From Hyaloraphidium curvatum SAG 235-1 (Eukaryota; Fungi; Monoblepharomycota), in assembly GCA_025558095.1 (NCBI GenBank), contig JAIVFI010000037.1:248001-312000 (forward strand): DNA of 64,000 nucleotides. Direction: 5' to 3'. Shown here one piece after another: positions 20,456 to 64,000 of the stretch (its first letter is position 1; the number at the start of each line of letters is the position of its first letter). Position numbers and translations under genes: made by a program. Below the pieces are notes generated by a model. That model saw only the letters and a program-made list of their open reading frames with translations, ran no database searches and was not told where the DNA came from.

Positions 20456-21493
20456 ATGGAGCTCCAGAACGAGGAAGGGGCGGAGAACGTGAAAGTGCGG
20501 ACTGCAGGATGCCGGCGAGGGAGCCATTGCTGACGGCGGCTGCGTCCGGAAACCTCTCCCGGCTTCCACGCCCACCCGCCCCACCGCCGCCCTCTCCTGC
20601 CCTCCGATCCCTCGGCCGCGCTTCTGCCTCGTACCTGCATTCCATCTGGATAGCTGTTCGGCAAATGGTCGTATGAAGATGTGAAGGCCTCGGACATCTC
20701 GCTCGAGGTGGGCCCGCCCTCGCGCCTCGGCTCCGCGCCGCTGACCCGTCCCTCGCATGCTTGCTCTCTCTCTGGAATCGCTTTTTTGCCCTCCGTGTGC
20801 GGTGCGCGCCACCAGGACTACATCCAAATCCGGCACCGCGTCTACATCCCGCACACCGCGGGGCGGTACCAGATGCGGCGGTTCAGGAAGGCCCAGGTGC
20901 GGCCCGCGCGCCGGAGGAGCGTAGCGTGCACTGATGCGCTGGGTCACCGCAGTGCCCCATCGTCGAGCGCCTGGCCAACTCGCTCATGATGCACGGCCGC
21001 AACAACGGCAAGAAGCTCATGGCGAACCGGATCGTCAAGCACACCTTCGAGATCATCCACCTCCTCACGGACCAGAACCCCATCCAGATCCTCGTGGACG
21101 CCATCATCAACACCGGCCCGCGCGAGGACTCGACCCGCATCGGGAGCGCCGGTACCGTGAGGCGGCAGGCCGTCGACGTGTCGCCGCTGCGGAGGGTCAA
21201 CCAGGCCATCTGGCTGCTGACGACGGGCGTAAGTTGCCGTTGTGGGGTTTGCGTGTGTGCGGAGGAGCCAACACCGGTCGGTCGCCAGGCTCGTGAGGCT
21301 GCGTTCAGGAACGTCAAGACCATTGCCGAGTGCCTGGCGGACGAGCTCATCAACGCGGCCAAGGGGTCCTCCAACTCGTACGCCATCAAGAAGAAGGACG
21401 AGCTGGAGCGTGTCGGTGCGTTGCCGCCAAATGTCTCCGCCAAGGGACGGGAACTGACTGCCGTTCCGGTTTCCAGCGAAATCCAACCGGTAA
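20456..21493 (+). CDS. RPS5: 40S ribosomal protein uS7 (S5)
   Basis: [79 protein letters not shown]; 5 introns. Confidence 0.97.
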
Positions 21494-23359: not shown

Positions 23360-23835
23360 AGCAGTAGTGCTGACGGCCACCGTGCCCCGGACCTCTCCCG
23401 GCCTCCAACGCCCTCCCGCCCCACCGCTGCCCTCTCCTGCCCTCCGATCCCTCGGCCGCGCTTCTGCCTCGTATCTGCAATCCATCTGGATCTTCAGCTG
23501 TTCGGCAAATGGTCGTATGAAGATGTGAAGGCCTCGGACATCTCGCTCGAGGTGGGCCCGCCCTCGCGCCTCGGCTCCGCGTCGCTGACCCGTCCCTCGC
23601 ATGCTTGCTCTGTCTCTGGAATCGCCTTTTGCCCTCCGTGCGGTGCCCGCCAACAGGACTACATCCAAACCCGGCACCGCGTCTACATCCCGCACACCGC
23701 GGGGCGGTACCAGATGCGGCGGTTCAGGAAGGCACGGACCGGAACCCCATACAGATCCTTGTGCCATCGCCAGTACCGACCCGTGCTAGGGTCGATCCGC
23801 ATGGGAGCTCTCGTACCGTGTGGGGCGTCGATGGG
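23360..23835 (+). pseudogene. Partial, intron-containing, degenerate duplicate of RPS5
   Basis: Near-identical to 20520-20890 (end of intron 1, exon 2, intron 2, exon 3), then jumps to a decayed copy of about 21066-21180; no start exon and no 3' exons. Confidence 0.85.
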
Positions 23836-24019: not shown

Positions 24020-26840
24020 ATGCTGAGCACCGAAGGCGCGGCACTCGCGCCGCGATTCACGCGGAAAGCGAAGCTGCCAGAAGCGCGACAAACGAGGCCG
24101 GCCGATGACGGCGTGCCGCTCCCCGTCCGGCTCGCGAAGCTGAAGGTACCCGAGTCCCTGGTTCCGCGCTCTCGCCGCTCCAACTCCCCGGAACGGCAGC
24201 GGCTCGTCCACGAGACCATTATTGCACATCGGAAGGACTTTCTGACGGCGTTTCAGTACTGCTCAAACCTGGTGCAGGACGTGGAAGCGGCATTCGGGAC
24301 CGTGGATGTGGGACTCGCCGAGGTCCTCAAACCGCGATGAATGTGAACCATTCGTGGGATTCCTGCAGGCTCAGGATGAAGAGAGAATACCGGGCGATCT
24401 TGTCGGGGAGATCCAGTCGCTCCGAGTCCTCGCGCAGGTGCGGGGACGGTGTCCGCGCGATGGACCCACTCTTGACGACGCGTGGGACAGCTGCACCACA
24501 CGTTGCAGAACTTTGACAGTCTCTTGGAGATTGGAGAATTCAAGATGGCCGCCGCAGCCGTCGTGCAGATGGTGGGTCCGGCGTTCGTGGCCAAGACCAG
24601 TCCACCAACACTCTCTGGCGGAAGATGGATCTTTTCGAGCAGCTCGTCGATGCCAACGGCTTGCGGTGCGACTTCAACATCTATCAGCTGCTGAAGAACG
24701 ACTACGCTGCAAAACGCGCCCGCCTCACCCAGTATCTGAACGAGATGTTCGCCGCGGGCATTTCCATCCACCAAGAGGGTTCAAGCGCAGAAGTCCAAGT
24801 CTCCTTCCGCCTCGTCGGTGAGCAAGGACTCGACCTTATCTTTTCCACTCAGCGCTGAACGAGTCGTCCGTACAGGGCCGCATGCCAAGAAGTACTACGA
24901 ATCGTCGATCCCCCTCGAAGACGTCCTGAGCGCCCTTTACCACCTCGAAACCCTGGAAGCAAAGTTCCAAACTGTAGCCACGCGTCTGACTCAGCTGTGC
25001 ATCGCTCCGTGCATTTCAAGTGCGAAGCTGGACATTCAATGTTCCAAGAGCAAGCTGCAGGCCGTCTTGAAGCTTCAAGGCGGCGCCAGAAAGTCCAGGG
25101 GACCAGGCCAATCTCCAGGTGGGTCAAGCTTCGCTCGTGCTATGCTGAATTAATCCTGTCTGGTGCTGCAGCTTTGGACCAGGTCCTCGACCGAATTCTC
25201 CAAATTTGCAGGTTCGTGTCCGAGGACGTCTTCCCAGCACCACCACCCAGCGACGGGCATTTTCCGACTGAAACACTGCTTGACGTCTTTGGCCGGACCT
25301 GGTGGCCATCACTGTGGAGCTCCGTGAACGAAAACGTCCTGACGCCGTTGGTGCCCGAGGACGTCCTTTCATTGAAGCACTTTCAAGAGGAGCTGAGGCC
25401 AAAAGTCCTCGAATTTGGGAACGCTTTGGAACAACTAGGTGGCTTGCCTCTCGCGCCGGGGTTCAATTCGACCCATTGATTCTCCGACCAGGGGTGCTTC
25501 CCGCCGGCAGGCGTGAGCTGGACGACTTTGTGGAGAACATCGCGGCTCTGAGCACCGCGAAACGGCGCGCATCGATCCTTGCGACTGCACGATCCGTCCT
25601 GCTCAACGAAGACATAAATATGGTGGAGGTCAGCGACGCAACAGAAAGAGGTGAGATCCCTACGTGTGCGCAACGCTCCGGTTCGCAGCTAAAGCAGAGG
25701 TCCGCAGGCGGCGTATTCAACCTGAATGGAGGCAAGAAGGACCCGGGCTTTGATCAGGCGAGAGGCAAGGAGGGCGCCGAGGGCAAGGCCGGCCTGGAAT
25801 CGGGAGAAGTCGACGCATTCAAGGTGCCTCGATGTTCCGTGTCATCACAAGTCCACGCAGTGGTCGAGATGGCGTATCAGATGGTAAACGAAGCCACCTC
25901 CAGCGATTCCAAAGCGTGGGTTTTGCTTGAGCATAGCCCTGTCGCGCGGGACGGCGGACCCTTAACGTTCATCGTTCTGCTGCCCTGCCTGCCAGTGCGA
26001 TCGAGCTGTTCTACTGCGCTCGCGACCTCTTCGACCTCATGCGCTGCGTTCGGCCGATGTGCCACGCGGACCCGGCGACGGCGACGATCGCAAGCACTCT
26101 CCTCTTCCACAACGATTGCCTCTACGTCTCCCATCACCTCCTCACGATCGGCTACCAGTACAAAAGCCAGCTGCCGCCCCCGCTCAATGAGACCGCAACC
26201 TTTGTCGACATGATTCCGTCTTTTCGGAAGCTCGGGGAGACGGCCCTGCGTGGACTCTTGGTACGTGGATCGAGAAAGTGCATCTCGTCGGGCTGACAGC
26301 AGTCCAGCGCAACCACAGGGACTACATCTTGGAGTGCTTGGTGGATGCCGATCTCCTGCGGGAGCTTCAAGTGCAGGAGCGATTCGAGAAGGCGGAAAGG
26401 TGCTTCAAGGACGTGATTGCGAAGATCGAAACCCTGTCCCGTTCCGCCAAGGTGACTCCTTCGCACGACCGTGCAGTTCCGTGCTGATCGTGCTATGCGC
26501 AGAACATCCTTCCGAGCGAGCTGTACTTGAGCGTGATCGGGCAGCTCGTCGACACGGTTGTCGAGCAGGTGCTCCTGATGGTTCCCCAACTGGACACGAC
26601 TTCGTGGCAAAACTCGTTTCAGGTCAAGTACATCCTCAACCTCGCCGCGGTTCGGATCGAACGCTGGTTCGAGATCTCGAGGAGGGAGGGGAACAAGACG
26701 ATCACGGAAAAGGTTGGGGACCTAGTTCCCGAACGCTTCTGCCTCGCCTGACAGGGTTTTGATGATTGCAGGCCCCCATCTCGAAACGAGTTGCGTCTTG
26801 GGAGCGCTTTTCGCGCCTCGTCGGCGCTCCCCCCGCGTGA
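24020..26840 (+). CDS. ZW10: Centromere/kinetochore protein ZW10 (Dsl1 family), multi-exon; C-terminus appears truncated
   Basis: FKVPRCSVS, LFYCARDLFDL, LLFHNDCLYVSHHLLTIGYQY, TFVDMIPSFRKLG, ILPSELYLSVIGQLVD; ends ...SWERFSRLVGAPPA* at the edge of the Fanzor element. Confidence 0.85.
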
Positions 26841-28255
26841 GGTGGGGTCGGAATATATAGTGCTCCGTTATTAGAAACCCGCACTCTCTAAGCGTCCCAC
26901 GCTACAGCTAAAGTCCTCGTTCTCTCTGTCGCTAACTCGGCACTACAGCGTCTAACATCGTGCTCCGCCATCTTGACGTCCTGATTGTGTCCATTTTTTG
27001 AGCTGGCGGATGGCCCCAGCATTCGGTCGCCGTCTCGCTGCATCGGTCCCCAACGTCCGTGCGCAGCTTAATGCTTCGTTGTCATGCACAGAGGGATTTT
27101 ACAGTCCGGAGACGTTCCGAGGTGGCAGAGGCCGGATTTGTAGCGCGTTCGCGAGGAAGAGGTGCGAACGCAGACCGCGGTCCCGAACAGCACAGCACGT
27201 CACCCCTCCGACCCGCTACAGCTCGTGATGGCGCACCGGGATACGGTGGAGAACAGCGCTGGCCGCCAGTAGTCTCTTACGCGATTCCTGGCTCCACCAA
27301 ACGTCGTGGGATGGCCGTACGGGCCGCTCCGCGTGGACCGCCCCAAGACGAGTAGTACTGCCGAGCGAACCCCGACCTGCAAACTCATCCCGCTGAAATG
27401 GCACCTAGGCGGCGCCAGGAGCATCTCGGAAGGCGATGCCGACGGCGCGGCTCCGTTTTGCGCCCGATCGTCGTCGCTACGACGACCGAAGTGCCGCGGT
27501 TGTGTCGAACCGCTGCGCTCCCGTTTCGCGACGTGCCATCGCAGGCATTCCACAGAAAGATGGCCGAGCTCCCAGAATTGCACGTCGGAAACGACTCGAA
27601 GGGGATCTCGGCCGCTCAGACGCCGATTCTGGGGAACCCGCACCGCATCGGTTGGGCGCTTAACCGTGTCGCCCCGCCGGAGCACTGGAAGCAATGGAGG
27701 TCCGGTGGCCGCGGTCTTTCCTCTTTTCCAGCTCAAACGATGATCCGCTTCGTCCGCTGGTGCTTGGAACCGAGATTGACAACCGCCGGCGAGAGGACGA
27801 AGCGGCAAAGGTCTGCCGCTGAATGCCCACGGGAGGCCCGGTCGCGGCAGGTGCAGTTGCAGGAAGAGCGAAAGCGAGCACGAGTCATTTCGCGTGAAAT
27901 CTAGGGCCCTCGACGGAGTGGGGCGACAGGCCTTTCGGAAACCGGGGGTCGGGAGCCCGAAGGCCCGAGCGGGGCGGAGTCGCCGACACCCCTGGTCAAA
28001 TGGCTGGTTAAATTGCTGGGCAAATAGGAAATGCCCGTTGCGGCAGACCGCCATGAAGCCGATAGGAAACGGAAACTGGGAAGGGCTTTTGGGCGCGTGA
28101 GACGTGGCCTTGGGTTTAGCGCCGTGTCGGAACGCAACGCGCCGCCGCGCGGCAGCGGCATGGCCGGGCACCAGGTACACTTTTGCACTCCCGTGGACAC
28201 CGCGTCGGACATTTTGGGCCAGTAGCGGCGACCGCGGCGCCGTGGCCGGCCCGCG

Positions 28256-31200
28256 ATGGCCGCGCACGCGGCTGCGTGGGCCAATTTCCTACCCGTACTG
28301 CCTTTGCCGTGGAGCGTACTGTGGAACAATCGGATTCACGGCCGCGATGTCGACATCACGCGGCCGCCGGCGGTGCAGTTCGCCATCTGGAACAACATGC
28401 CTGGGGTCGCTGTTGAAGCCGACGCCTTCAACCTCCCGGCGAACCTGGCCAGGTTCTGCCCAGTTCACGGCAACGCTTGTCCAGCTCCGCAGCAGCTTGC
28501 AGTCGGTCAGATGGTCCAGTTTGTGCAGGGTATTCCGTTCTGCAATTGTAAGTATGAGCCGCCTGCTACCCGACATACGGATCTCTCACACCCAGCGCTC
28601 GCAAGCCGCTTTCCACCAAGGCTTCGAACCGGCATTGGACGTGTTCCTTGGAACCTGCCCAGTCGCCCAACTTCGATGTGAGCAACTTCCGCATTTCCAC
28701 AATGCGCTTGCGGGGGCTTTTGGCTTTATCCTTCGTTTCTACGACGCGACCGCGACGATCCCGGAGCGGCACGTATCGGTGAGTGCGATTTGTGCCGTGT
28801 TTTTCTTGAGTCTGACGCCTCTGCGCAGCATGCACGATACGGCGTGGCGTTGGTCTTTGTCCCCCTCAGCTCTCTTCGTCCGACAACCCTTGTGGCCGCT
28901 GATGTCCCCGACGCATGGATCGAGAGGCCGACGACGGACGTGGTTTTCGACGGGATCCAGGCGTTCTACGGGCGTGCCACCATCTGGGACGACAACATGA
29001 TCTACGGCAACGCCCCGAACAAGACTTGCGTTGACTGCTCCCGCCGTGGCCACCCGAGCAAAGCCTCGTTCTACTGCGAGCAACATAACCCCCGTGCATT
29101 GAATGGCATCAAGGCCTTCGAATGGGATCACGAGGGTGGGCTATACTGGTACCGACCGTACGTCGTGAAGACGAGTTTGGACGCTTTCTGCCGGCATGAG
29201 CCGCTCCGTGGGCTTTTCAAGACCATTTCGGCTGCTACAACCATGGTTTGCTTTGAAGGAGCCCTCTTCCTGCAGTTGTTTTTGTCGCTCTACCCGTTGC
29301 GGTCCGCGGATGCAACCGGGATGTGGGAACCGATCGTGGACCTGAATTTGTCGGATTCCCAAATCCAGAACCTGTTCAAGGCGTTCTATTTCCCGTCGGA
29401 CGATGGCTACGGCAGGGTTTTACAGCTCCTAGACCGTTTCCATCCCCTAGCGCGCGAGGTATTTGTTCAGCACTACCTACCATGCCGGAAAGGAAGGGCG
29501 ACCTGGCCCGGGGACTGGCCTGCAGCCCGCGCGGTCTGCGACAACTTTGACTCTCTGCCAAATCAAGTTGCTGCCAACGTTCGCACGCAGTTCGTGGGCG
29601 CCTGGAAACGCCACGTCGTGTACAACATCGGGGACTGGACCGTGTGGTGGATCAAGGAGCGGCTCAAGGAGCGGATCACGGCTGCTGCGCAGTGGCCAGC
29701 GTGGATGCTTGGCAAGCTGGCCTGGGGCATGTACAACTACTTCACGCTGGGCCGCTCGGACAACCTGGACATCTTCGAAAGGCGCAAGGCGGAACGAAGA
29801 GCAGCAGCTGCTTCGCGGAGGGAGGGAAGAGCACCTGCCGAAGCGGCGGTCCCGGCCGACCACCCGTTCGAGCTACCGACTTTCCGGGCGGAAGATGCCT
29901 GTGGATGGCCACCGTCCACGCTCAACGTGGCGAACCGAATCATTGCTGAGCTGCGCCGGAAGTTTGGACCCGTCGATTGGAGCAAGACGGAGACGGGCGG
30001 CCTGATCTGCAAGGATAACGCCTTCATCGGCAACTACATCCGCTGGCTTAGGTACCTTTCGCTTGCGCGCGAGGAGGCCAACGCGAAGCAGTTTGCGCTT
30101 GTCCCGCTCTACGACTGGTCCAACAAGTTCGTCCTCGTCGATACGATGGTGCTGTATTGGTGCCTCAGGATCGTGGAAGATAGGGTTGGTGGTCTGTGCG
30201 GGACCAAACTGCTTTCTTTTCTGACGCCTAGCTCTACACCGCAAACAGCTCCGTGCATCGGAACAACCCCCGCCGGCGGACCTGAAGCTGCCCAAGACCC
30301 CGGCAGTCTTCTTCGCCGACCACGAGAATCTGCACAACTGGCACCTGTATCTGTTCAACGTCGACGGAGTCTTCCGCAACAAGAGCCCCGAAGCCCGGCG
30401 CAAGCGGAACCGGCGCCGCAAGGAGCAGCGGAGGCGGAGAAAAGCGCAGGAGGCGCAGAGCGGGCAGCGGTTTCAACACAAGCGGGGAGGGTGGAAGCGC
30501 GTGAAGAAGAAGAAGGTGGGCGACGGATCTCCGGATTTCGCCGTACTGGCAACCCATGAGAACTGCTTCCGCAGTCAAAGTCTCGGCCAATACCAGGCGA
30601 TCTCCGCGATTCCAGTTCGATACCCGAGTCCGAGATACCCCAAACAACACCTCCTCCGCCCCCCTTCCCCAAGCCAAAATCCATAGTCTTCGACGGGTCG
30701 TTCGTGGTCAACAACAGCGACGTCTCGATCCAGCTGCACAAGCGGAAGAGAACGTCCGCAACGTCGGACAGGAGCGCTTTCGAGGGTGCCGATGAGGGCT
30801 TCACGCGGGACCCGAACGGGCGCAGCAAGCGCACCGGCACGGGTGCGTGGGTCGGGGACGTGGACAGAATACCGGATCAGGTCAAGGAGAACTTCGACGT
30901 CTTCCCGGACCACACCATCGTCGCGGCGATCGACTTCGGCTGGAAGAATGTAGCAACGTGGGGCTGGACGACGCTGGGCAAGATCAGGGCCGCCGGCAAT
31001 CTCCATGTCTACGACAAGAACCCTCTGGACAACCCGCTACTGTACGACGTGGAGGAGGTCGTTGCAGTCGAGGTGGACGGCGTCGTCATGGACCCCGAGG
31101 GAAGGCCGCTGCTGGCGGCCGACGTCGAGCAGAGAGCGATGTTTGGCGGCACGACGGTCTGGGTCGACGACCCGATGCTCATGGACACGGGTGTCGTCGG

Positions 31201-32081
31201 GATGGACCGCGCAAACATGCCCTGGGTCGCGGACGACGTCGAGGAGAAGGTGGTGGACGGGTGCAAGGTCTACTACCGGAAGGTGAACAAGGGCAACGTC
31301 AAGCTCACCTTTGGCAAGGTCACGGCCGGCAACATCAAAAGGCATACGGGCGCTGCGCGCCGAGAGAAGGAGACCGCCGAGAAGGTCGAGCAGGTCTTTG
31401 GTCGGAAAGACCCCTTCGCCAACCTCGGTTCTCCGCGCACCTGCGTTGTCTCGGAGCTCGAGGAGCACCTGCGCAAGGTGTTCGAAAAGCTGGACCGTGT
31501 TTGGAAAGTGACGCTCGACCCTGATATCGTCAAGCTGCGATTCAAGAGCTACATCGACAAGCAGCGGTTCTACCAGAATACGCTCCCGGCCTGGGTGGTG
31601 GGAGGCAAGGAGAACCTGCGCAAGCCCATCCTCCTGTACCCTGGTGCGGCGAGCCTCGTCTTCAAGAACCAGCGCGGCAACATGCCCGCCTCTGTTCGCA
31701 AGTGTCGCCGCGGCATCGCCCACCGCCTCAACCCCGGCATGTGGCAGTTTGCCATGGACACGGGCGAGGAGTACACCTCTCAAGTGCACGCAGCGGCACA
31801 CTCGTGGGACCACCCCGAGCGATCGCTCGTCTGCATCAACCACGCCGAGGACAGTCCCGGCAAGCGCCCACGCGACCTCCAACGTTGCCAAGGAACAACG
31901 TGTGCGTAACGGTTTCCTTCTGCGCGAGGGGTGAAGCTCACGATCCCCTATAGATTGCTGTGGAGGGCACGTGGCCCGGGACAAGAACTCGGTGAAGGAC
32001 ATCATGAGCGTGGGGCTCAGCAACGTCGTCTTCGGTAAGCGGCCCACGATCTTTACCTACGAATACTGGCGAAACCGTTGA
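28256..32081 (+). CDS. Fanzor1 (eukaryotic TnpB homologue) RNA-guided RuvC endonuclease, spliced
   Basis: Introns 28779-28828, 30185-30248, 30516-30574 and 31902-31953 join one frame of about 1025 aa from 28829. It contains CVDCSRRGHPSKASFYC, VVKTSLDAFCR, FALVPL, FDGSFVVNNSDVSI, RuvC-I AAIDFGW (D 30932), RuvC-II GEEYTSQ (E 31766), RuvC-III RDKNS (D 31980) and C-terminal GKRPTIF. Exons upstream of 28779 are uncertain. Confidence 0.85.
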
Positions 32082-32165
32082 AGACAGTAGCCAGAAAACT
32101 AGTAGCGGCGTCGAACCTGCGGAGTGCGGGTTTCTGATGTAGCCGCACGAGGAAAATCCTTTAGA
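32050..32165 (+). ncRNA. Putative Fanzor omegaRNA scaffold and guide
   Basis: Lies between the Fanzor 3' end and the element right end, where omegaRNAs are encoded. Possible stems: CAGAAA(32092)/TTTCTG(32131), GTGCGG(32124)/CCGCAC(32143), AGGA/TCCT(32150-32160). Positional inference only. Confidence 0.5.
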
Positions 32166-32222: not shown

Positions 32223-32885
32223 ATGTCTGAAGAACCTGAGGACCCGAAGCCCCAGCTGGTCGAGGAGTGTGAGTAGGGGGTCAACGGAGGCACACGGGCT
32301 CGGTCAGGGATGTGTGCAGCGTCGCCGTGGCGTCGACGTCTCTGCTTCCCACGGACCTGGGGACATCTTGCCCGCTGTTGACGACAATTATGGGCGCTCA
32401 ATTGTGCTGGAGTCTCTGCGATTGGCGCCGGCACCTTCGGACGGGAGGATGGCGGATGGCGTTGGGTCTCGGAGGCATTCGAACTCAACCGTGGGTCCGA
32501 TCCGCCAGGCAAGGAGTCGGACCACTGCAAGCACCTCCAACACGTCTATGAGCACTGCGCGGAGAGGTGGGCTCGTCCGGAAGCCGCGATGGACGGGCTC
32601 GGAGCCTGATTCGGACTGGTCGGACACGCAGGATCGAGAAGGAGGGAGGCGAGCAGAACTGCGTGCTGGAGTTCTTTGACCTCTTGGAGTGCATAGTACG
32701 TGATGGTGCTCGATGACTACTCGTTCTCTCTAACCCGCGGTCGCGCGTCCCCCTAGGATCACTGCGTTGGGTGAGTAGGGTCAGGTAACTCAGGGTAACG
32801 TCTCTGACCGCGGTCCACATGCTACCTCCTGGTGGGAATCTTGCTATCGACTTCTAGGCCGAAGCTGTTCAAGCAGCTGGTGTAA
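32223..32885 (+). CDS. QCR6: Cytochrome bc1 complex hinge protein (subunit 6)
   Basis: Spliced: MSEEPEDPKPQLVEEC KESDHCKHLQHVYEHCAERIEKEGGEQNCVLEFFDLLECI DHCVG PKLFKQLV*; 5 small exons, absent from the ORF track. Confidence 0.92.
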
Positions 32886-53954: not shown

Positions 53955-55248
53955 TTTAGAAAGGCCGATGGTCGCCGACTATGGTCGCAGTTGGGTGTCT
54001 GGGATCTGGGACGATATGGGTTGTGATGACTACGCCGCCCGTCTCCCACAGGAGGGTGAGCAAAGTTTCTCCTCGTCATCAAATGCTCCTCAAATGCTCC
54101 AGTCCATTGCTAGGTCCCCCTACTGTACAGATAGATGGCCTGGCTTACACTGATTGCTGATTGCCCCATGAAAAGGCTAAGAAACAAGCAAGGTGAAAGA
54201 GAAGGGAGTTATTGGTAACCCTTCCATTTCCCAGTTTTCCTGTCCTACATTTGCCTTTTGCCTTGCCTTTTGACTATTCGATAGAATAGGAGGTTGAGGT
54301 CCAAAGTTCCCCCCCGGCGGGACAATCCCTTTTTTTTTCTTCGCAACAAATCGACTTTTCGCGTCGAGCTTGGCCGAACGCCGCCCGGAACCCGGTCCAA
54401 TGGCTCTTGTTATCCTATGCGCAGGTTATCGTGGGGTTGTTGGGGTTGTTCGGGGTTGGACCGTGGACGCCGACTATATGCCTTCGGACCTCCGGCGTCG
54501 CTGACCCTCCAGTTCTGTTGAATCGCAGCCAAGGCCCGTGCGAATCGCGCTTCATATGACACGTTGTGGCTACGGTGAGTCGGTTTCGGCTCCGCGACAA
54601 CGGGAGGGGGTGTGCTAGAGGGCTCCGCAGCGCCGCCGAATGTGCGAGGCTCTCGGTGGTGCTGGCCGCCTCTCCTGGCACGGCAACGCGGGCCACACGC
54701 TGCTTTCATTGTGAAAAGACGCATTGGAACGTTTGGGACCCGGGATTCGGATGAATCGAGGGTGGGGGGACGCGCCGGAGAATGGACCGCCCCAGGGTAT
54801 AGTACTCAGGGTATAGTAGTATTGGTGACCCGGACCTGCCCCTGGCTTGGCCGCTGTTACACCATCAGTTTGCTGCTAATTTGGCGTTTGTCGTCGTGCA
54901 TCTTTTTCATTTTCCCTGTTTTCTGTCCTTCATGGACTTTGAAATGAAGCTGGCGATGGAGTTGAGGGCCTTCTCCTTTTGCTGCCTCACTTTGATCGTG
55001 GGCTCGAACTCCTTGATGCTGAGAGCCCAGAGCCAGGTCTCCATGTTCCACTCGCGGCCCAGTGCTTCCAGTCTGGTCTGCAGCTTCTGGCGCCGCTCTG
55101 CATTTGCTGAACAGTGGAACAGAAAATGTTGTTCATCTCCAATGTGCTCAGGGTCATGCTTGCACATCCTCTGCTGCACCTCAAGTCCTTGGTGCCTGCC
55201 TGTTTCCACCTCCAGGTCGTGGGTAGAGCAGAGCAGCTTCTGGACGTC

Positions 55249-55423
55249 TGTCAGGACAGGCCTTGGAGATGGCCTAGTCATGGGTTGGTTAGGGAGAGCA
55301 TATGGGGGCAGCCCAAACACCATGTACCCCCACTGCTTCTCACTGTGTACATAGACATCCCGCTGCCTCGATGCTGTGCAGTCCCCGCTAGGCAGGGCCC
55401 AGCTGGCCCCTGGGTTCCTGACA
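55249..55423. mobile_element. Solo LTR (175 bp)
   Basis: TG...CA termini with 8-bp inverted ends TGTCAGGA/TCCTGACA; flanked by ACGTC/ACGTT (5-bp TSD, one mismatch); interrupts the LINE ORF. Confidence 0.8.
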
Positions 55424-55774
55424 ACGTTCCTCCGGTGTTTCTCCACCCGGATCAGCGACGGTGCAATGTGACCAAAGGTCATGTCACACATCCTCCAGAA
55501 GTGCAGCTTGTCGTTGTCCTTGAGCTTCTGGGCATTGATCTCCCTGAACTTGCCCTTCACAAGATTCTCCACAGTCTCCTTGGCCCATGAAAAAGTGTCC
55601 TTCTCCCACATCTCCCTCCACTCCTCTCCACCATAGTACACAAGTAGTTCCCTCAGGAAGGCAGCCCAGTTCCAGCACCCCTTCAGTGCCTCGATCTTGA
55701 GCTCCTTGTAGAGCAGGTACAATGCAGGGTCAGCTGTTTTGATACGCATGAGGAACTTGAGAGCCGACTCATGG

Positions 55775-55946
55775 TGTCAGGAACCCAGGGGCCAGCTGGG
55801 CCCTAGCGGGGACTGCACAGCATCGAGGCGGCGGGATGTCTATGTACACAGTGAGAAGCAGTGGGGGTACATGGTATTTGGGCCGCCCCCATATGCTCTC
55901 CCTAACCAACCCATGACTAGGCCATCTCCCAAGGCCCGTCCTGACA
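55775..55946. mobile_element. Solo LTR (172 bp), inverted relative to 55249-55423
   Basis: Reverse-complement match to the first LTR with the same termini; no TSD; flanks come from LINE positions about 0.8 kb apart. Confidence 0.8.
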
Positions 55947-56147
55947 GGTACACCCATCCCTTCCAGCTTCCTCCACAACCTTGGGCGCTCCACCGTGTCA
56001 AAAGCCTTTGTGAAATCTACAAACACCATGATCAGCTTTTCCTTGCGTGCCTTGGCCAAGGAGAAGAGCGCCTCAGCGAGGAACACAGTGCATGAAGGGT
56101 GGACCTCCGTGCCCGGAATCCAAACTGCGAGTCTTCCAGCAGCTTGT

Positions 56148-59100
56148 TAGAATAGAATAGTATTGGTGACCCGGACCTGCCCCTGGCTTGGCCGCTGTTA
56201 CACCATGAGTTTGCTGCTAATTGCAAAGTTCATCGTCGTCGTGTGTCTTTTTCATTTTCCCAGTTTTCCTGTCCTTCATGGACTTTGAGATGAAGCTGGC
56301 AATGGAGTTGAGGGCCTTCTCCTTCTGCCGCCTCGCTTTGATCGTGGGCTCGAACTCCTTGATGCTAAGAGCCCAGAGCCAGGTCTCCATGTTCCACTCG
56401 CGGCCTAGTGCTTCCAATCTAGTCTGCAGCTTCTTGCGCCGCTCCGCATTTGCTGAACAGTGAAACAGAAAGTGTTGTTCGTCTCCAATGTGCTCAGGGT
56501 CATGCTTGCACGTTCTCTGCTGCACCTCAAGTCCTTGGTGCCTGCCTGTCTCCACCTCCAGGTCGTGGGTAGAGCACAGCAACTTTTGGACATCCCTCCG
56601 GTGCTTCTCCACCCGGATCAGGGATGGTCCGATGTGGCCAAAGGTCATGTCACACATCCTCCAAAAGTGCAGTTTGTCGTTGTCCTTGTTCCTTTGGGCA
56701 TTGATCTCCCTGAACTTGCCCTTCACAAGATTCTCCACAGTCTCCATGAGGCCATGAGAAAGTGTCCTTCTCCCACATCTCCCTCCCATCTTCCCCGCCA
56801 TAGTATACAAGTAGTTCCCTCAGGAAGGCAGCCCAGTTCCAGGACCCCTTCAGTGCCTCGATCTTGAGCTCTTTGTAAAGTAGGTACAGCGCAGGATCCG
56901 CTGTTTTGATGCGCATGAGGAACTTGAGTGCCGACTCGTGGTCATGAACTGCAAGGGGGTACTGGCCAGTGATCGCATACAGACAGGCCAGGGAGGTAGA
57001 CTTGGGCAGATGAGTGACGGCACGAAGAGCCATGCATGTCACTTTGTCCCTGGTGCTTTCCCCGGCAAGGTACTCCTCCTTCGGCATCTCAACAATGAAC
57101 GGGTTCCCATATTGGCCCACTGCCTTGACCTTTGTGTTGTAGAGCTTGAGCTGGAGGTCAGGACTCATCCCAGGCTGCTCCCTGAAGTCGCGGAGCCAGA
57201 GCCCATAAGCAGCGTTCATCTTGGCCTCTCTGCCATGCACATGGTCCTTGCTCCGGCCGGTTGAGGTCAGCTGATACCCCAGAAGCTTGAAGCTGTCAAC
57301 CCTCTTCAGCTCCTGGTCCCTGTACATGACCTTTACACGGTGAGGTATCCTCCTGGCCATCCACTCTGTCTTGCTGACGTTGATCTCCAGCCCATTGGCA
57401 CTGGCATATGCAGACAAAAGATCCAGCTGCATCTTGGCATCCTTCACCGTCTTCGAGATCAAAGTGGTGTCGTCTGCAAAGAACAGAGCCAGTGTCACAG
57501 CCAGCAAGCTGACCATCCTCTCCTGATCCTCTTCCTCCTCAGACACCATGCCCAGATCCATCCCTTTTGCACCATTGGCCTCCATGAAAGCAGTGATGTT
57601 GTTGATGAACAAGATGAAGAACAGCGACGAGAGAGGGTCCCCCTGCTTCACTCCGGTCAGGAACTTGATGAAGTCTGACTTGGTCCCGTCTTCATCCCGG
57701 AGCCGTCCCCACACCCGCCCGAACGCCATCTCGAACATGTCAACAACCAGTTTGGGTACTCCCATCTCCTCCGCCAGCTTCTGCCATAACCTGGGGCGCT
57801 CCACCGTGTCAAAAGCCTTTGTGAAATCTACAAACACCATGATCAGCTTCTCCTTGCGTATGCGTGCCTTGGCCAAGGAGAAGAGTGCCTCGGCAAGGAA
57901 CACTGCATGAAGGGTCGATCTCCGTGCACGGAATCCAAACTGCGAGCCTTCCAGCAGCTTGTTGCACTCAGCCCAGGGAGCTAGCCGAGCGTTCCAGACC
58001 AGGGAGAAGACCTTCTCCAGCGTCCTCTCTATGCTGATGCCTCGGTAGTTGCCAGCCACGTTCTTGGGCCCCTTCTTGTGCAGCATCACCAGCAGTGTCT
58101 GGCCCCAGTCATCCATCTTGACGCCATTGAGCACGTCGTTGACGAGGTTGACAACAGCTTGCTTCAGTACTGCAGTCCCGTACTTGACGAACTCGAGCCG
58201 GATCCCATCCTCGTCCTTTGCCTTGCCGTTGGGGGCCTTCTTCAAGACCCTCTCCAGCTCCTTGAGGGTGATGGGGCGCGTACTCGGCGCTGGCCACCAT
58301 CTCCATGTGGCGTACCAGCTCCGCAAAGGGTACGGGGTTGCCCTTCCGCCTCGCATAAGTGTTGGTTCCCGATGGTGACATGCTCATAGACGTCAGACCA
58401 CTTGGGCCAGAGACGTGGTACCTTCTCTTTAGTCCAGTGGTCTAACAATAAGTCTTTCCAAGCAGTTGGTAGTGAAACAGAAAGTGTTGTTCGTCTCCAA
58501 TGTGCTCAGGGTCATGCTTGCACGTTCTCTGCTGCACCTCAAGCCCTTGGTGCCTGCCTGTCTCCACCTCCAGGTCGTGGGTAGAGCACAGCAACTTTTG
58601 GACATCCCTCCGGTGCTTCTCCACCCGGATCAGGGACGGTCCGATGTGGCCAAAGGTCATGTCACACATCCTCCAAAAGTGCAGTTTGTCGTTGTCCTTG
58701 AGCCTCTGTGCATTGATCTCCCGGAGCTTGCCCTTCACAAGATTCTCCACAGTCTCCTTGGGCCATGAGAAAGTGTCCTTCTCCCACATCTCCCTCCCAT
58801 CTTCGCCGCCATAGTATACAAGTAGTTCCCTCAGGAAGGCAGCCCAGTTCCAGGACCCCTTCAGTGCCTCGATCTTGAGCTCTTTGTAAAGTAGGTACAG
58901 CGCAGGATCCGCTGTTTTGATGCGCATGAGGAACTTGAGTGCCGACTCGTGGTCATGAACTGCAAGGGGGTACTGGCCAGTGATCGCATACAGACAGGCC
59001 AGGGAGGTAGACTTGGGCAGATGAGTGACGGCACGAAGAGCCATGCATGTCACTTTGTCCCTGGTGCTTTCCCCGGCAAGGTACTCCTCCTTCGGCATCT

Positions 59101-59585
59101 CAACAATGAACGGGTTCCCATATTGGCCCACTGCCTTGACCTTTGTGTTGTAGAGCTTGAGCTGGAGGTCAGGACTCATCCCAGGCTGCTCCCTGATGTC
59201 ACGGAGCCAGAGCCCATAAGCAGCGTTCATTTTGGCCTCTCTGCCATGCACATGGTCCTTGCTCCGGCCGGTTGAGGTCAGCTGATACCCCAGAAGCTTG
59301 AAGCTGTCAACCCTCTTCAGCTCCTGGTCCCTGTACATGACCTTTACACGGTGAGGTATCCTCCTGGCCATCCACTCTGTCTTGCTGACGTTGATCTCCA
59401 GCCCATTGGCACTGGCATATGCAGACAAAAGATCCAGCTGCATCTTGGCATCCTTCACCGTCTTCAAGATCAAAGTGGTGTCGTCTGCAAAGAACAGAGC
59501 CAGTGTCACAGCCAGCAAGCTGACCATCCTCTCCTGATCCTCTTCCTCCTCAGACACCATGCCCAGATCCATCCCTTTTGCACCT
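56148..59585 (-). mobile_element. Non-LTR retrotransposon copy 2: (TTCTA)n tail, RT unit, then a second 5'-truncated unit
   Basis: Tail TAGAATAGAATAG at 56148; RT ORF 56650-58356 frameshifted near 56750; internal junction 58470/58471; truncated at 59585. Confidence 0.92.
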
Positions 59586-59659
59586 TAGAATAGAATAGAA
59601 TAGTATTGGTGACCCGGACCTGCCCCTGGCTTGGCCGCTGTTACACCATGAGTTTGCTG

Positions 59660-61798
59660 CTAATTGCAAAGTTCATCGTCGTCGTGTGTCTTTTTCATTT
59701 TCCCAGTTTTCCTGTCCTTCATGGACTTTGAGATGAAGCTGGCAATGGAGTTGAGGGCCTTCTCCTTCTGCCGCCTCGCTTTGATCGTGGGCTCGAACTC
59801 CTTGATGCTAAGAGCCCAGAGCCAGGTCTCCATGTTCCACTCGCGGCCTAGTGCTTCCAATCTAGTCTGCAGCTTCTTGCGCCGCTCCGCATTTGCTGAA
59901 CAGTGAAACAGAAAGTGTTGTTCGTCTCCAATGTGCTCAGGGTCATGCTTGCACGTTCTCTGCTGCACCTCAAGTCCTTGGTGCCTGCCTGTCTCCACCT
60001 CCAGGTCGTGGGTAGAGCACAGCAACTTTTGGACATCCCTCCGGTGCTTCTCCACCCGGATCAAGGATGGTCCGATGTGGCCAAAGGTCATGTCACACAT
60101 CCTCCAAAAGTGCAGTTTGTCGTTGTCCTTGGGCCTCTGGGCATTGATCTCCCTGAACTTGCCCTTCACAAGATTCTCCACAGTCTCCTTGGGCCATGAG
60201 ACAGTGTCCTTCTCCCACATCTCCTTCCCATCTTCGCCACCATAGTATACAAGTAGTTCCCTCAGGAAGGCAGCCCAGTTCCAGGACCCCTTCAGTGCCT
60301 CGATCTTGAGCTCTTTGTAAAGTAGGTACAGCGCAGGATCCGCTGTTTTGATGCGCATGAGGAACTTGAGTGCCGACTCGTGGTCATGAACTGCAAGGGG
60401 GTACTGGCCAGTGATCGCATACAGACAGGCCAGGGAGGTAGACTTGGGCAGATGAGTGACGGCACGAAGAGCCATGCATGTCACTTTGTCCCTGGTGCTT
60501 TCCCCGGCAAGGTACTCCTCCTTCGGCATCTCAACAATGAACGGGTTCCCATATTGGCCCACTGCCTTGACCTTTGTGTTGTAGAGCTTGAGCTGGAGGT
60601 CAGGACTCATCCCAGGCTGCTCCCTGATGTCACGGAGCCAGAGCCCATAAGCAGCGTTCATTTTGGCCTCTCTGCCATGCACATGGTCCTTGCTCCGGCC
60701 GGTTGAGGTCAGCTGATACCCCAGAAGCTTGAAGCTGTCAACCCTCTTCAGCTCCTGGTCCCTGTACATGACCTTTACACGGTGAGGTATCCTCCTGGCC
60801 ATCCACTCTGTCTTGCTGACGTTGATCTCCAGCCCATTGGCACTGGCATATGCAGACAAAAGATCCAGCTGCATCTTGGCATCCTTCACCGTCTTCGAGA
60901 TCAAAGTGGTGTCGTCTGCAAAGAACAGAGCCAGTGTCACAGCCAGCAAGCTGACCATCCTCTCCTGATCCTCTTCCTCCTCAGACACCATGCCCAGATC
61001 CATCCCTTTTGCACCATTGGCCTCCATGAAAGCAGTGATGTTGTTGATGAACAAGATGAAGAACAGCGACGAGAGAGGGTCCCCCTGCTTCACTCCGGTC
61101 AGGAACTTGATGAAGTCTGACTTGGTCCCGTCTTCATCCCGGAGCCGTCCCCACACCCGCCCGAACGCCATCTCGAACATGTCAACAACCAGTTTGGGTA
61201 CTCCCATCTCCTCCGCCAGCTTCTGCCATAACCTGGGGCGCTCCACCGTGTCAAAAGCCTTTGTGAAATCTACAAACACCATGATCAGCTTCTCCTTGCG
61301 TATGCGTGCCTTGGCCAAGGAGAAGAGTGCCTCGGCAAGGAACACTGCATGAAGGGTCGATCTCCGTGCACGGAATCCAAACTGCGAGCCTTCCAGCAGC
61401 TTGTTGCACTCAGCCCAGGGAGCTAGCCGAGCGTTCCAGACCAGGGAGAAGACCTTCTCCAGCGTCCTCTCTATGCTGATGCCTCGGTAGTTGCCAGCCA
61501 CGTTCTTGGGCCCCTTCTTGTGCAGCATCACCAGCAGTGTCTGGCCCCAGTCATCCATCTTGACGCCATTGAGCACGTCGTTGACGAGGTTGACAACAGC
61601 TTGCTTCAGTACTGCAGTCCCGTACTTGACGAACTCGAGCCGGATCCCATCCTCGTCCTTTGCCTTGCCGTTGGGGGCCTTCTTCAAGACCCTCTCCAGC
61701 TCCTTGAGGGTGATGGGGCGCGTACTCGGCGCTGGCCACCATCTCCATGTGGCGTACCAGCTCCGCAAAGGGTACGGGGTTGCCCTTCCGCCTCGCAT
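59660..61798 (-). CDS. LINE-type reverse transcriptase with C-terminal Zn-knuckle-like domain, no endonuclease (712 aa)
   Basis: NGKAKDEDGI, KKGPKNVAGNYRGISI, QFGFR, FVDFTKAFDTV, GVKQGDPLSSLFF, FADD, GLEINVSKT, FKLLG, HDLEVETGR...C...GDEQHFLFHC. Confidence 0.93.
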   Translation of the reverse strand: MRGGRATPYPLRSWYATWRWWPAPSTRPITLKELERVLKKAPNGKAKDEDGIRLEFVKYGTAVLKQAVVNLVNDVLNGVKMDDWGQTLLVMLHKKGPKNVAGNYRGISIERTLEKVFSLVWNARLAPWAECNKLLEGSQFGFRARRSTLHAVFLAEALFSLAKARIRKEKLIMVFVDFTKAFDTVERPRLWQKLAEEMGVPKLVVDMFEMAFGRVWGRLRDEDGTKSDFIKFLTGVKQGDPLSSLFFILFINNITAFMEANGAKGMDLGMVSEEEEDQERMVSLLAVTLALFFADDTTLISKTVKDAKMQLDLLSAYASANGLEINVSKTEWMARRIPHRVKVMYRDQELKRVDSFKLLGYQLTSTGRSKDHVHGREAKMNAAYGLWLRDIREQPGMSPDLQLKLYNTKVKAVGQYGNPFIVEMPKEEYLAGESTRDKVTCMALRAVTHLPKSTSLACLYAITGQYPLAVHDHESALKFLMRIKTADPALYLLYKELKIEALKGSWNWAAFLRELLVYYGGEDGKEMWEKDTVSWPKETVENLVKGKFREINAQRPKDNDKLHFWRMCDMTFGHIGPSLIRVEKHRRDVQKLLCSTHDLEVETGRHQGLEVQQRTCKHDPEHIGDEQHFLFHCSANAERRKKLQTRLEALGREWNMETWLWALSIKEFEPTIKARRQKEKALNSIASFISKSMKDRKTGKMKKTHDDDELCN

Positions 61799-61883
61799 AA
61801 GTGTTGGTTCCCGATGGTGACATGCTCATAGACGTCAGACCACTTGGGCCAGAGACGTGGTACCTTCTCTTTAGTCCAGTGGT

Positions 61884-63809
61884 CTAACAATAAGTCTTTC
61901 CAAGCAGTTGGTAGTGAAACAGAAAGTGTTGTTCGTCTCCAATGTGCTCAGGGTCATGCTTGCACGTTCTCTGCTGCACCTCAAGCCCTTGGTGCCTGCC
62001 TGTCTCCACCTCCAGGTCGTGGGTAGAGCACAGCAACTTTTGGACATCCCTCCGGTGCTTCTCCACCCGGATCAGGGACGGTCCGATGTGGCCAAAGGTC
62101 ATGTCACACATCCTCCAAAAGTGCAGTTTGTCGTTGTCCTTGAGCCTCTGTGCATTGATCTCCCGGAGCTTGCCCTTCACAAGATTCTCCACAGTCTCCT
62201 TGGGCCATGAGAAAGTGTCCTTCTCCCACATCTCCCTCCCATCTTCGCCGCCATAGTATACAAGTAGTTCCCTCAGGAAGGCAGCCCAGTTCCAGGACCC
62301 CTTCAGTGCCTCGATCTTGAGCTCTTTGTAAAGTAGGTACAGCGCAGGATCCGCTGTTTTGATGCGCATGAGGAACTTGAGTGCCGACTCGTGGTCATGA
62401 ACTGCAAGGGGGTACTGGCCAGTGATCGCATACAGACAGGCCAGGGAGGTAGACTTGGGCAGATGAGTGACGGCACGAAGAGCCATGCATGTCACTTTGT
62501 CCCTGGTGCTTTCCCCGGCAAGGTACTCCTCCTTCGGCATCTCAACAATGAACGGGTTCCCATATTGGCCCACTGCCTTGACCTTTGTGTTGTAGAGCTT
62601 GAGCTGGAGGTCAGGACTCATCCCAGGCTGCTCCCTGATGTCACGGAGCCAGAGCCCATAAGCAGCGTTCATTTTGGCCTCTCTGCCATGCACATGGTCC
62701 TTGCTCCGGCCGGTTGAGGTCAGCTGATACCCCAGAAGCTTGAAGCTGTCAACCCTCTTCAGCTCCTGGTCCCTGTACATGACCTTTACACGGTGAGGTA
62801 TCCTCCTGGCCATCCACTCTGTCTTGCTGACGTTGATCTCCAGCCCATTGGCACTGGCATATGCAGACAAAAGATCCAGCTGCATCTTGGCATCCTTCAC
62901 CGTCTTCGAGATCAAAGTGGTGTCGTCTGCAAAGAACAGAGCCAGTGTCACAGCCAGCAAGCTGACCATCCTCTCCTGATCCTCTTCCTCCTCAGACACC
63001 ATGCCCAGATCCATCCCTTTTGCACCATTGGCCTCCATGAAAGCAGTGATGTTGTTGATGAACAAGATGAAGAACAGCGACGAGAGAGGGTCCCCCTGCT
63101 TCACTCCGGTCAGGAACTTGATGAAGTCTGACTTGGTCCCGTCTTCATCCCGGAGCCGTCCCCACACCCGCCCGAACGCCATCTCGAACATGTCAACAAC
63201 CAGTTTGGGTACTCCCATCTCCTCCGCCAGCTTCTGCCATAACCTGGGGCGCTCCACCGTGTCAAAAGCCTTTGTGAAATCTACAAACACCATGATCAGC
63301 TTCTCCTTGCGTATGCGTGCCTTGGCCAAGGAGAAGAGTGCCTCGGCAAGGAACACTGCATGAAGGGTCGATCTCCGTGCACGGAATCCAAACTGCGAGC
63401 CTTCCAGCAGCTTGTTGCACTCAGCCCAGGGAGCTAGCCGAGCGTTCCAGACCAGGGAGAAGACCTTCTCCAGCGTCCTCTCTATGCTGATGCCTCGGTA
63501 GTTGCCAGCCACGTTCTTGGGCCCCTTCTTGTGCAGCATCACCAGCAGTGTCTGGCCCCAGTCATCCATCTTGACGCCATTGAGCACGTCGTTGACGAGG
63601 TTGACAACAGCTTGCTTCAGTACTGCAGTCCCGTACTTGACGAACTCGAGCCGGATCCCATCCTCGTCCTTTGCCTTGCCGTTGGGGGCCTTCTTCAAGA
63701 CCCTCTCCAGCTCCTTGAGGGTGATGGGGCGCGTACTCGGCGCTGGCCACCATCTCCATGTGGCGTACCAGCTCCGCAAAGGGTACGGGGTTGCCCTTCC
63801 GCCTCGCAT
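61884..63809 (-). CDS. LINE-type reverse transcriptase, tandem-unit form truncated in the Zn knuckle (641 aa)
   Basis: Near-identical to 59660-61798 until ...HFLFH, then reads YQLLGKTYC* across the unit junction. Confidence 0.9.
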   Translation of the reverse strand: MRGGRATPYPLRSWYATWRWWPAPSTRPITLKELERVLKKAPNGKAKDEDGIRLEFVKYGTAVLKQAVVNLVNDVLNGVKMDDWGQTLLVMLHKKGPKNVAGNYRGISIERTLEKVFSLVWNARLAPWAECNKLLEGSQFGFRARRSTLHAVFLAEALFSLAKARIRKEKLIMVFVDFTKAFDTVERPRLWQKLAEEMGVPKLVVDMFEMAFGRVWGRLRDEDGTKSDFIKFLTGVKQGDPLSSLFFILFINNITAFMEANGAKGMDLGMVSEEEEDQERMVSLLAVTLALFFADDTTLISKTVKDAKMQLDLLSAYASANGLEINVSKTEWMARRIPHRVKVMYRDQELKRVDSFKLLGYQLTSTGRSKDHVHGREAKMNAAYGLWLRDIREQPGMSPDLQLKLYNTKVKAVGQYGNPFIVEMPKEEYLAGESTRDKVTCMALRAVTHLPKSTSLACLYAITGQYPLAVHDHESALKFLMRIKTADPALYLLYKELKIEALKGSWNWAAFLRELLVYYGGEDGREMWEKDTFSWPKETVENLVKGKLREINAQRLKDNDKLHFWRMCDMTFGHIGPSLIRVEKHRRDVQKLLCSTHDLEVETGRHQGLEVQQRTCKHDPEHIGDEQHFLFHYQLLGKTYC

Positions 63810-63923
63810 AAGTGTTGGTTCCCGATGGTGACATGCTCATAGACGTCAGACCACTTGGGCCAGAGACGTGGTACCTTCTCTTTAGTCCAGTGGTCTAACA
63901 ATAAGTCTTTCCAAGCAGTTGGT
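61913..63923. repeat. 2011-bp tandem repeat unit
   Basis: Junction ...CCAAGCAGTTGGT|AGTGAAACAG... recurs at 58470, 61912 and 63923. Confidence 0.95.
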
Positions 63924-64000
63924 AGTGAAACAGAAAGTGTTGTTCGTCTCCAATGTGCTCAGGGTCATGCTTGCACGTTCTCTGCTGCACCTCAAGCCCT

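Follow-up and report, generated by a model that had tools for sequence, protein, structure and literature searches.

Does the fungus Hyaloraphidium curvatum, an early-diverging, chytrid-like species, encode an RNA-guided nuclease of the Fanzor1 lineage, and could the copy described here still cut DNA? We analysed a 64,000-nt stretch of its genome (the window), in which an earlier note, made from the letters alone, had read a divergent, intron-split and very large Fanzor1 gene; the early-diverging fungal host that it proposed was borne out. The reading that we favour, and consider likely, is a Spu-1-type DNA transposon, non-autonomous and inserting at TA, that carries a divergent nuclease of the Fanzor1 lineage. 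In our judgement there is somewhat better than an even chance that this copy cuts DNA today.

Gene structure and splicing

The gene lies on the forward strand, to which all window coordinates below refer. Four GT-AG introns are present exactly where they had been claimed, at 28779-28828, 30185-30248, 30516-30574 and 31902-31953 (50, 64, 59 and 52 nt), and the exon phases chain through them without a stop to the TGA at 32079-32081. The earlier note had called these reading frames unannotated, but a public record, KAI9005058.1 (P0001; 969 aa, hypothetical protein), already covers the gene. Checked exon by exon against the window, P0001 starts at the ATG at 28997 and uses exactly introns 2, 3 and 4. 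Exon 2 (28829-30184) encodes the REC/WED-side half of the protein and exon 3 (30249-30515) a Lys/Arg tract resembling a nuclear localisation signal. Exon 4 (30575-31901) encodes the end of WED, RuvC-I with D605, a set of long helices, RuvC-II with E883 and an altered zinc/TNB region. Exon 5 (31954-32081) supplies RuvC-III with D937 (31980-31982) and the stop codon; as proposed, RuvC-III is in frame only once intron 4 is removed.

Introns 2 to 4 are supported by the public model and by homologues that are intronless or carry the same intron. In the frames predicted for exons 2, 4 and 5, three homologues from metagenomes (P0003, P0012 and P0013) align with 30-43% identity (36-43% for exon 2), and the aligned stretches reach the borders of introns 2 and 4; the match of homologues to exon 3 is weak (E 0.007). 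At the position of intron 4, P0003 and P0012 read through without an intron, and the same codon is interrupted in the paralogues C13 and C1 as well as in L064 and L065. The change of frame requires intron 3, whose exact borders fall in low-complexity sequence. Intron 2 has a weak donor (GTTGGT), and every intron has alternative in-frame splice sites.

The proposed length of about 1025 aa holds as a codon sum (452+89+442+1+41 = 1,025), but intron 1, and this length with it, is unproven. Intron 1 has textbook splice signals and may lie in coding sequence or in the 5' UTR; exon-wise comparison with homologues gave no support for it or for the 56 codons at 28829-28996. Mild support for the predicted frame at 28829-28996 and 28256-28546 comes from a codon model, and the paralogues C31 and C39 start about 25 residues ahead of their own zinc knuckles. 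Further upstream, 28256-28778 holds an ORF from an ATG at 28256, with a likely intron at 28548-28595, and no in-frame chain from this region to the main gene was established. As no homologue was found for anything 5' of the zinc knuckle and codon support upstream is mild, 969 aa is the supported minimum length of the predicted protein.

Probable descent from Fanzor1

The proposed Fanzor1 descent was supported by a profile of the RuvC half, a Foldseek comparison, neighbours in the Atlas and PF07282 matches in homologues. When it included two further families of this genome (B and C, described below), the RuvC-half profile found SpuFz1 (8GKH) as its best match (E 3.2e-4), in which the Glu and Arg-Asp motifs line up with those of the profile; with both families removed, SpuFz1 was unmatched and only the RuvC-III of Fanzor2 was recovered, weakly (E 0.013). 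The fold model comprised 455 residues at a pLDDT of 50, the last 90 residues, RuvC-III included, being unmodelled. Foldseek placed SpuFz1 in positions 1-4 for this partial model (E 0.012-0.026), with Cas12 proteins and other Fanzors ranked below. A wide fold search of the partial model put Cas12j at the top (VIA Z 7.0, rmsd 6.2, 186 aligned), and GtFz1 also appeared; a full-length AlphaFold model reached a pLDDT of 37. Long helices predicted between RuvC-I and RuvC-II align to SpuFz1 in these low-confidence models. The Atlas neighbours were Cas12f1-like-TNB clusters from fungi and giant viruses (0.95-0.96), and three homologues match PF07282 (best E 1.5e-4).

Searching Pfam exon by exon gave no family for this protein, a PDB sequence search with exon 4 or the full-length profile gave no match, and scans of viral and metagenome DNA likewise gave none. 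Among 1.84 billion representatives we found five true relatives, three of which come from the Hyaloraphidium genome, the gene itself included. The identity scores are each modest and all point the same way, supporting the Fanzor1 lineage; descent from Fanzor1, with an RNA encoded at the right end, is in our judgement highly probable.

Catalytic residues and drifted signatures

The D-E-D triad of a RuvC domain split into parts I, II and III is present, as had been claimed, and is conserved in homologues. Its residues lie in the motifs AIDFG (30926-30940), GEEYTSQ (31763-31783) and ARDKNS (31974-31991), with codons at 30932-30934 for D605, 31766-31768 for E883 and 31980-31982 for D937. The spacing from E883 to H890 is that of the Fanzor "Ealt", a Glu with six residues before the first zinc ligand (PMC10711439); P0003, P0012 and P0013 have Cys at the place of H890.

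The word divergent proved apt, as a number of Fanzor signatures have degenerated here. At RuvC-I, where DPG is a near-exclusive Fanzor fingerprint and D-hydrophobic-G the normal active motif of TnpB (PMC10711439), the gene reads DFG and C13 reads DYG; of the other close homologues, the five with sequence across this site all have DPG, as do families B and C. A C4 zinc ribbon (PF07282) between RuvC-II and RuvC-III is not matched in this protein, whose first zinc cysteine is His, with H894, C905, H908, C923 and C930 of the zinc region kept in the family. Hallmarks of Fanzor1 include a TDG motif in WED, an enlarged REC and a kinked REC2 helix pair; at the aligned place of TDG this protein has NNS and its homologues TDC or TNG. 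Close homologues outside the sub-branch keep DPG and the cysteine, so the changes here are derived. For this reason we class the gene as a variant that descends from Fanzor1 and do not claim textbook membership.

What is particular to this gene is the joint drift of three signatures together with a selected acidic insertion. The insertion (30998-31303; 102 aa, residues 627-728) follows the RuvC-I strands, contains 20 acidic residues and 20 Val, is predicted to form mostly beta strands and is found only in this gene and in the C13 paralogue. A threefold repeat within it is weakly indicated (shuffle p 0.10, 0.06, 0.006). Compared with C13 by codon position, the gene as a whole shows identities of 0.78, 0.82 and 0.58, and the insertion alone 0.76, 0.82 and 0.62; these values indicate that the gene and its insertion are under purifying selection. 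Homologues, as well as families B and C, conserve the zinc knuckle that lies at the N terminus here, C-x2-C-x4-H-x7-C (29027-29077, residues 11-27). Of the Arg/Lys-rich localisation signal in the earlier note, the basic tract stands (30396-30515, with a counterpart at the same place in homologues) and its nuclear role is predicted. Introns and localisation signals are common in Fanzors, the latter predicted in about 60% (PMC10530073).

This drift could be taken to mean that the protein is a Fanzor1-derived, guide-directed binder that takes its guides from protein-less ghost copies of the element (described below) and cuts poorly or never, immobilised or domesticated, with an acidic insertion that damps RuvC or recruits a partner. 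DFG, the loss of TDG and the His zinc site would fit such a protein, and are partly common to C13, the closest paralogue, whose catalytic Glu is Gly; so would the 20 acidic residues under selection, and a single complete copy whose right TA is mutated. Yet this copy retains all three acids, and C13 is 5'-truncated, which leaves decay as a possible source of its Glu loss. D-hydrophobic-G is, moreover, the usual active motif of TnpB (PMC10711439), and PpFz1 is active despite a 100-aa insertion in RuvC (PMC11423790). We consider a binder unlikely.

A TA-flanked element of the Spu-1 type

Around the gene we delimited an element of 5,289 bp (26860-32148) with imperfect 27-bp inverted ends. The left inverted repeat (26860-26886) is complementary at 21/27 positions to the right one (32122-32148), with a perfect 14-bp inner block. 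It abuts the left target-site dinucleotide TA (26858-26859), itself preceded by TA, which fits the (G/T)(A/G)TA flank motif. The block at 26860-26995 is common with protein-less ghost copies (84% to L044). A branch-point and acceptor-like motif lies in it at 26932-26948; such motifs are kept near the left end in the window element and in both ghost subfamilies, and could capture host read-through transcripts. The block at 27020-28130 scores as non-coding in the codon model and is shared at 67-86% with three other repeated elements of the genome, two of which are other Fanzor1-like families; it is probably a promoter or leader. An autonomous Tc1/mariner element has a DDE transposase inside; here no exon of the element matches a DDE transposase family in Pfam.

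With a covariance model we recovered 11 right ends in the genome: this copy, the 5'-truncated C13 and C1, and eight protein-less ghosts of up to about 0.97 kb that form two subfamilies. Between stop codon and right end, C13 and C1 have 0.9 kb to which the ghost interior shows 66-69% similarity. Seven of the eight ghosts end in GCCGCAC followed by TA, and one is cut short; a GA end occurs in this copy alone, and its right end shares 96% identity with ghost copies. Of the seven left flanks scored, six finish in TATA, TGTA or GGTA and one in TGTG; taking Spu-1 as the analogue, the predicted TAM is (G/T)(A/G)TA. The architecture, with TA-flanked inverted ends, no transposase inside and ghosts, is that of the Spu-1 type. 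Two other assignments were discarded: the CACTA superfamily, as the ends read TAGTG...CACTA, the reverse orientation, and a splice acceptor at the 3' end, as the base after CACTA varies.

Helitron2 elements show asymmetric inverted repeats, end hairpins, no fixed target duplication and a Rep/helicase partner. A one-ended, Helitron2-like or break-primed mode of copying, in place of cut-and-paste, is compatible with the main reading and is suggested by several 5'-truncated copies with intact right ends, by the imperfect inverted repeats and by an 11-bp direct repeat flanking C1, as in the CRe elements of Chlamydomonas (PMC3627910). That duplication is seen at one truncated copy only and may in part be microhomology, whereas the full-length copies have symmetric GT/GC...AC ends, most ghosts and family B have TA on both sides, and the element contains no Rep/helicase. 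We hold this mode of spread to be quite unlikely and keep TA insertion as the preferred reading. The C1 repeats (L043, 6078-6088 and 7508-7518) overlap the last scaffold bases and may mark a break-primed insertion.

The element lies between a ZW10-like gene on its left and a small gene starting near 32224 on its right. The ZW10-like gene (26503-26840; Pfam match weak, E 0.039) ends some 20 nt short of the element and apparently lacks about 40 C-terminal model positions; a full ZW10_C2 match lies on C24. The missing positions were not found right of the element, so a deletion at the junction may explain the lost TA.

Predicted right-end RNA and guide

In agreement with the earlier note, an omegaRNA-like right end is predicted at the element. 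The predicted scaffold (32077-32150, 74 nt) folds into a terminal stem and an inner hairpin and overlaps the right inverted repeat. The terminal stem uses the final ACUA, the target-site dinucleotide included, and the GA end places one mismatch in the stem of this copy; the inner hairpin is 27 nt longer in C13 and C1. Across eight distinct sequences, the relatedness of which weakens the test, 95.6% of cells were paired and three pairs had changed on both sides. None of 500 shuffles reached the pairing or the covariation score, and slid controls paired at 34-45%. The recurrence of the stem at metagenomic loci is more telling than this covariation test: four homologue loci end 66-101 nt past the stop in GCAC followed by TA, and each forms the same stem from other letters, where the background is at most 5%. 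Rfam returned no match, and no conserved first stem-loop was established in the right-end RNA.

Fanzor1 RNAs, characteristically free of pseudoknots, are described as closed by such a double-stranded stem, target-site bases included (PMC10711439); for Spu-1, ghost loci are reported along with a scaffold of 75 nt and a guide of 14-15 nt (PMC10432273). Placed by the positions in these two papers, the native guide of this copy would be the host flank at 32151-32165. We found no TAM-flanked target for it in the genome assembly, and none for the ghost guides in 373 kb (part of the genome).

The mismatched stem bears on whether the copy is recently dead, its frame intact by inertia and the gene either unexpressed or left with an RNA disabled by the GA end. 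It is the only complete copy, lacks a near-identical sister, and has paralogues that are all truncated or broken. Its 969 codons and three frame-keeping introns are nevertheless free of lesions, and ghosts with the 96% identical right end could supply RNA in trans. A dead copy seems to us very unlikely.

A model for the nuclease

For the preferred reading, a mobile element with a working nuclease, we propose a mechanism that starts from features with direct support: the gene structure (by homology), catalytic residues, ends, RNA covariation, ghosts, flank motif and purifying selection. The gene would be transcribed and spliced, and the protein would enter the nucleus by means of its basic tract. 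There it would bind an RNA of about 90 nt, made up of the 74-nt right-end scaffold and about 15 nt of flanking guide and drawn from its own locus or from ghost copies. The complex would cut double-stranded DNA where the guide matches beside 5'-(G/T)(A/G)TA-3', that is, at empty insertion sites, and repair from the filled allele would restore or spread the element, a homing role. Movement itself would be the work of a transposase acting in trans from elsewhere. For these steps (expression, RNA binding, TAM, cleavage and homing) we infer from characterised Fanzor1 proteins.

Several observations count against the favoured reading: structural scores are low; DPG, TDG and the first zinc Cys are changed; the copy is the only complete one and has a mutated right TA; and the catalytic Glu is missing from its closest paralogue. 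A bolder reading, improbable in our view, is that the sub-branch formed by this gene and C13 is a re-engineered Fanzor1, in which a zinc knuckle and a selected acidic insertion accompany a TnpB-like DFG and a His/Cys zinc site. One resident gene would then use eight ghost guide loci as a regulated RNA-guided nuclease or binder, and could seed transposase-free, one-ended insertions at its own breaks.

The closest known system is SpuFz1 in Spu-1 of Spizellomyces punctatus (PMC10432273, PMC3627910; PDB 8GKH). Both elements lack an internal transposase and have inverted ends of about 30 bp with TA, conserved bases left of the element, a 74-75-nt scaffold directly past the stop, protein-less ghosts with a variant scaffold, and a D-E-D triad with its Glu close to the zinc site. 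In contrast to Spu-1, the present protein has at least 969 aa (633 in Spu-1) and the element 5.3 kb (2.1 kb), with introns, imperfect inverted repeats, a CCHC knuckle, DFG, no TDG and a His/Cys zinc site; there is one complete copy where Spu-1 has 17-19, and the predicted TAM is (G/T)(A/G)TA where that of Spu-1 is CATA. PpFz1 of Parasitella parasitica (PMC11423790) is likewise a fungal Fanzor1 with a RuvC insertion of about 100 aa, but the insertion here is acidic, Val-rich and mostly beta by prediction, and has no demonstrated homology to the cyclophilin-binding FRI domain. CrFNuc and the CRe-1,2,3 elements of Chlamydomonas (PMC10530073, PMC3627910) share an intron-containing Fanzor1 gene and 5'-truncated copies, one of which has a flanking duplication here; those elements are Helitron2-associated, whereas the full copies here have TA-flanked symmetric ends.

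Published precedents exist for introns, localisation signals, TA ends, ghosts and RuvC insertions of 100 aa; our literature search found no paper pairing Fanzor with Hyaloraphidium or Monoblepharidomycota. The gene adds a deep, database-poor branch of Fanzor1, directly testable since scaffold, guide start and TAM are all predicted. It also shows that the triad can persist through drift of DPG, TDG and the C4 ribbon alike, so that surveys based on Pfam or motifs miss such genes. Its size makes the protein less attractive as a compact editor.

Other Fanzor-like families of the genome

"Very large" holds beyond the published range: most Fanzor1 proteins have 600-700 aa (PMC11423790), a length of about 800 aa being reached by some (PMC10711439), and this sub-branch is larger and more altered than the published members. 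Within the Hyaloraphidium genome, however, the size is unexceptional (950-1,185 aa in families B and C). The Fanzor1-like family B (L055-L058; C18, C2, C12, C20) comprises four 6.9-kb copies, 94-96% identical, with an ORF of at least 950 aa, a knuckle, DPG, EYGTSKCC and GT...AC ends flanked by TA; its left flanks are GGTA, CTTA and GTTA. The ORF ends without RuvC-III, which probably lies behind an intron. Family C, also Fanzor1-like (L059-L061; C15, C21, C7), has three copies of about 6.4 kb, 94-95% identical and one of them frame-broken, with an ORF of about 1,185 aa, a Pro-rich start, a knuckle, DPG, EFRTSK and a similar right end. These younger families are better bets for activity.

A fourth repeated element with the same 5' non-coding block occurs at L062 and L063 (C5, C3). 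One further related Fanzor is distributed over L040:2440-3904 (C45, the RuvC half, with a frame break) and L041:4100-6056 (C31, the N-terminal half), which have 477 bp at 100% identity and further blocks in common; the element may be split, rearranged or mis-assembled. C39 holds another N-terminal half, and more distant RuvC-half matches lie in open frames of about 1,200 aa at C1:1445043-1445621 and C31:259435-260013. Elsewhere in the window, 54800-64000 is a tandem array of reverse-transcriptase-like repeats, and 20528-20892 and 23368-23733 form a local duplication, 84-98% identical.
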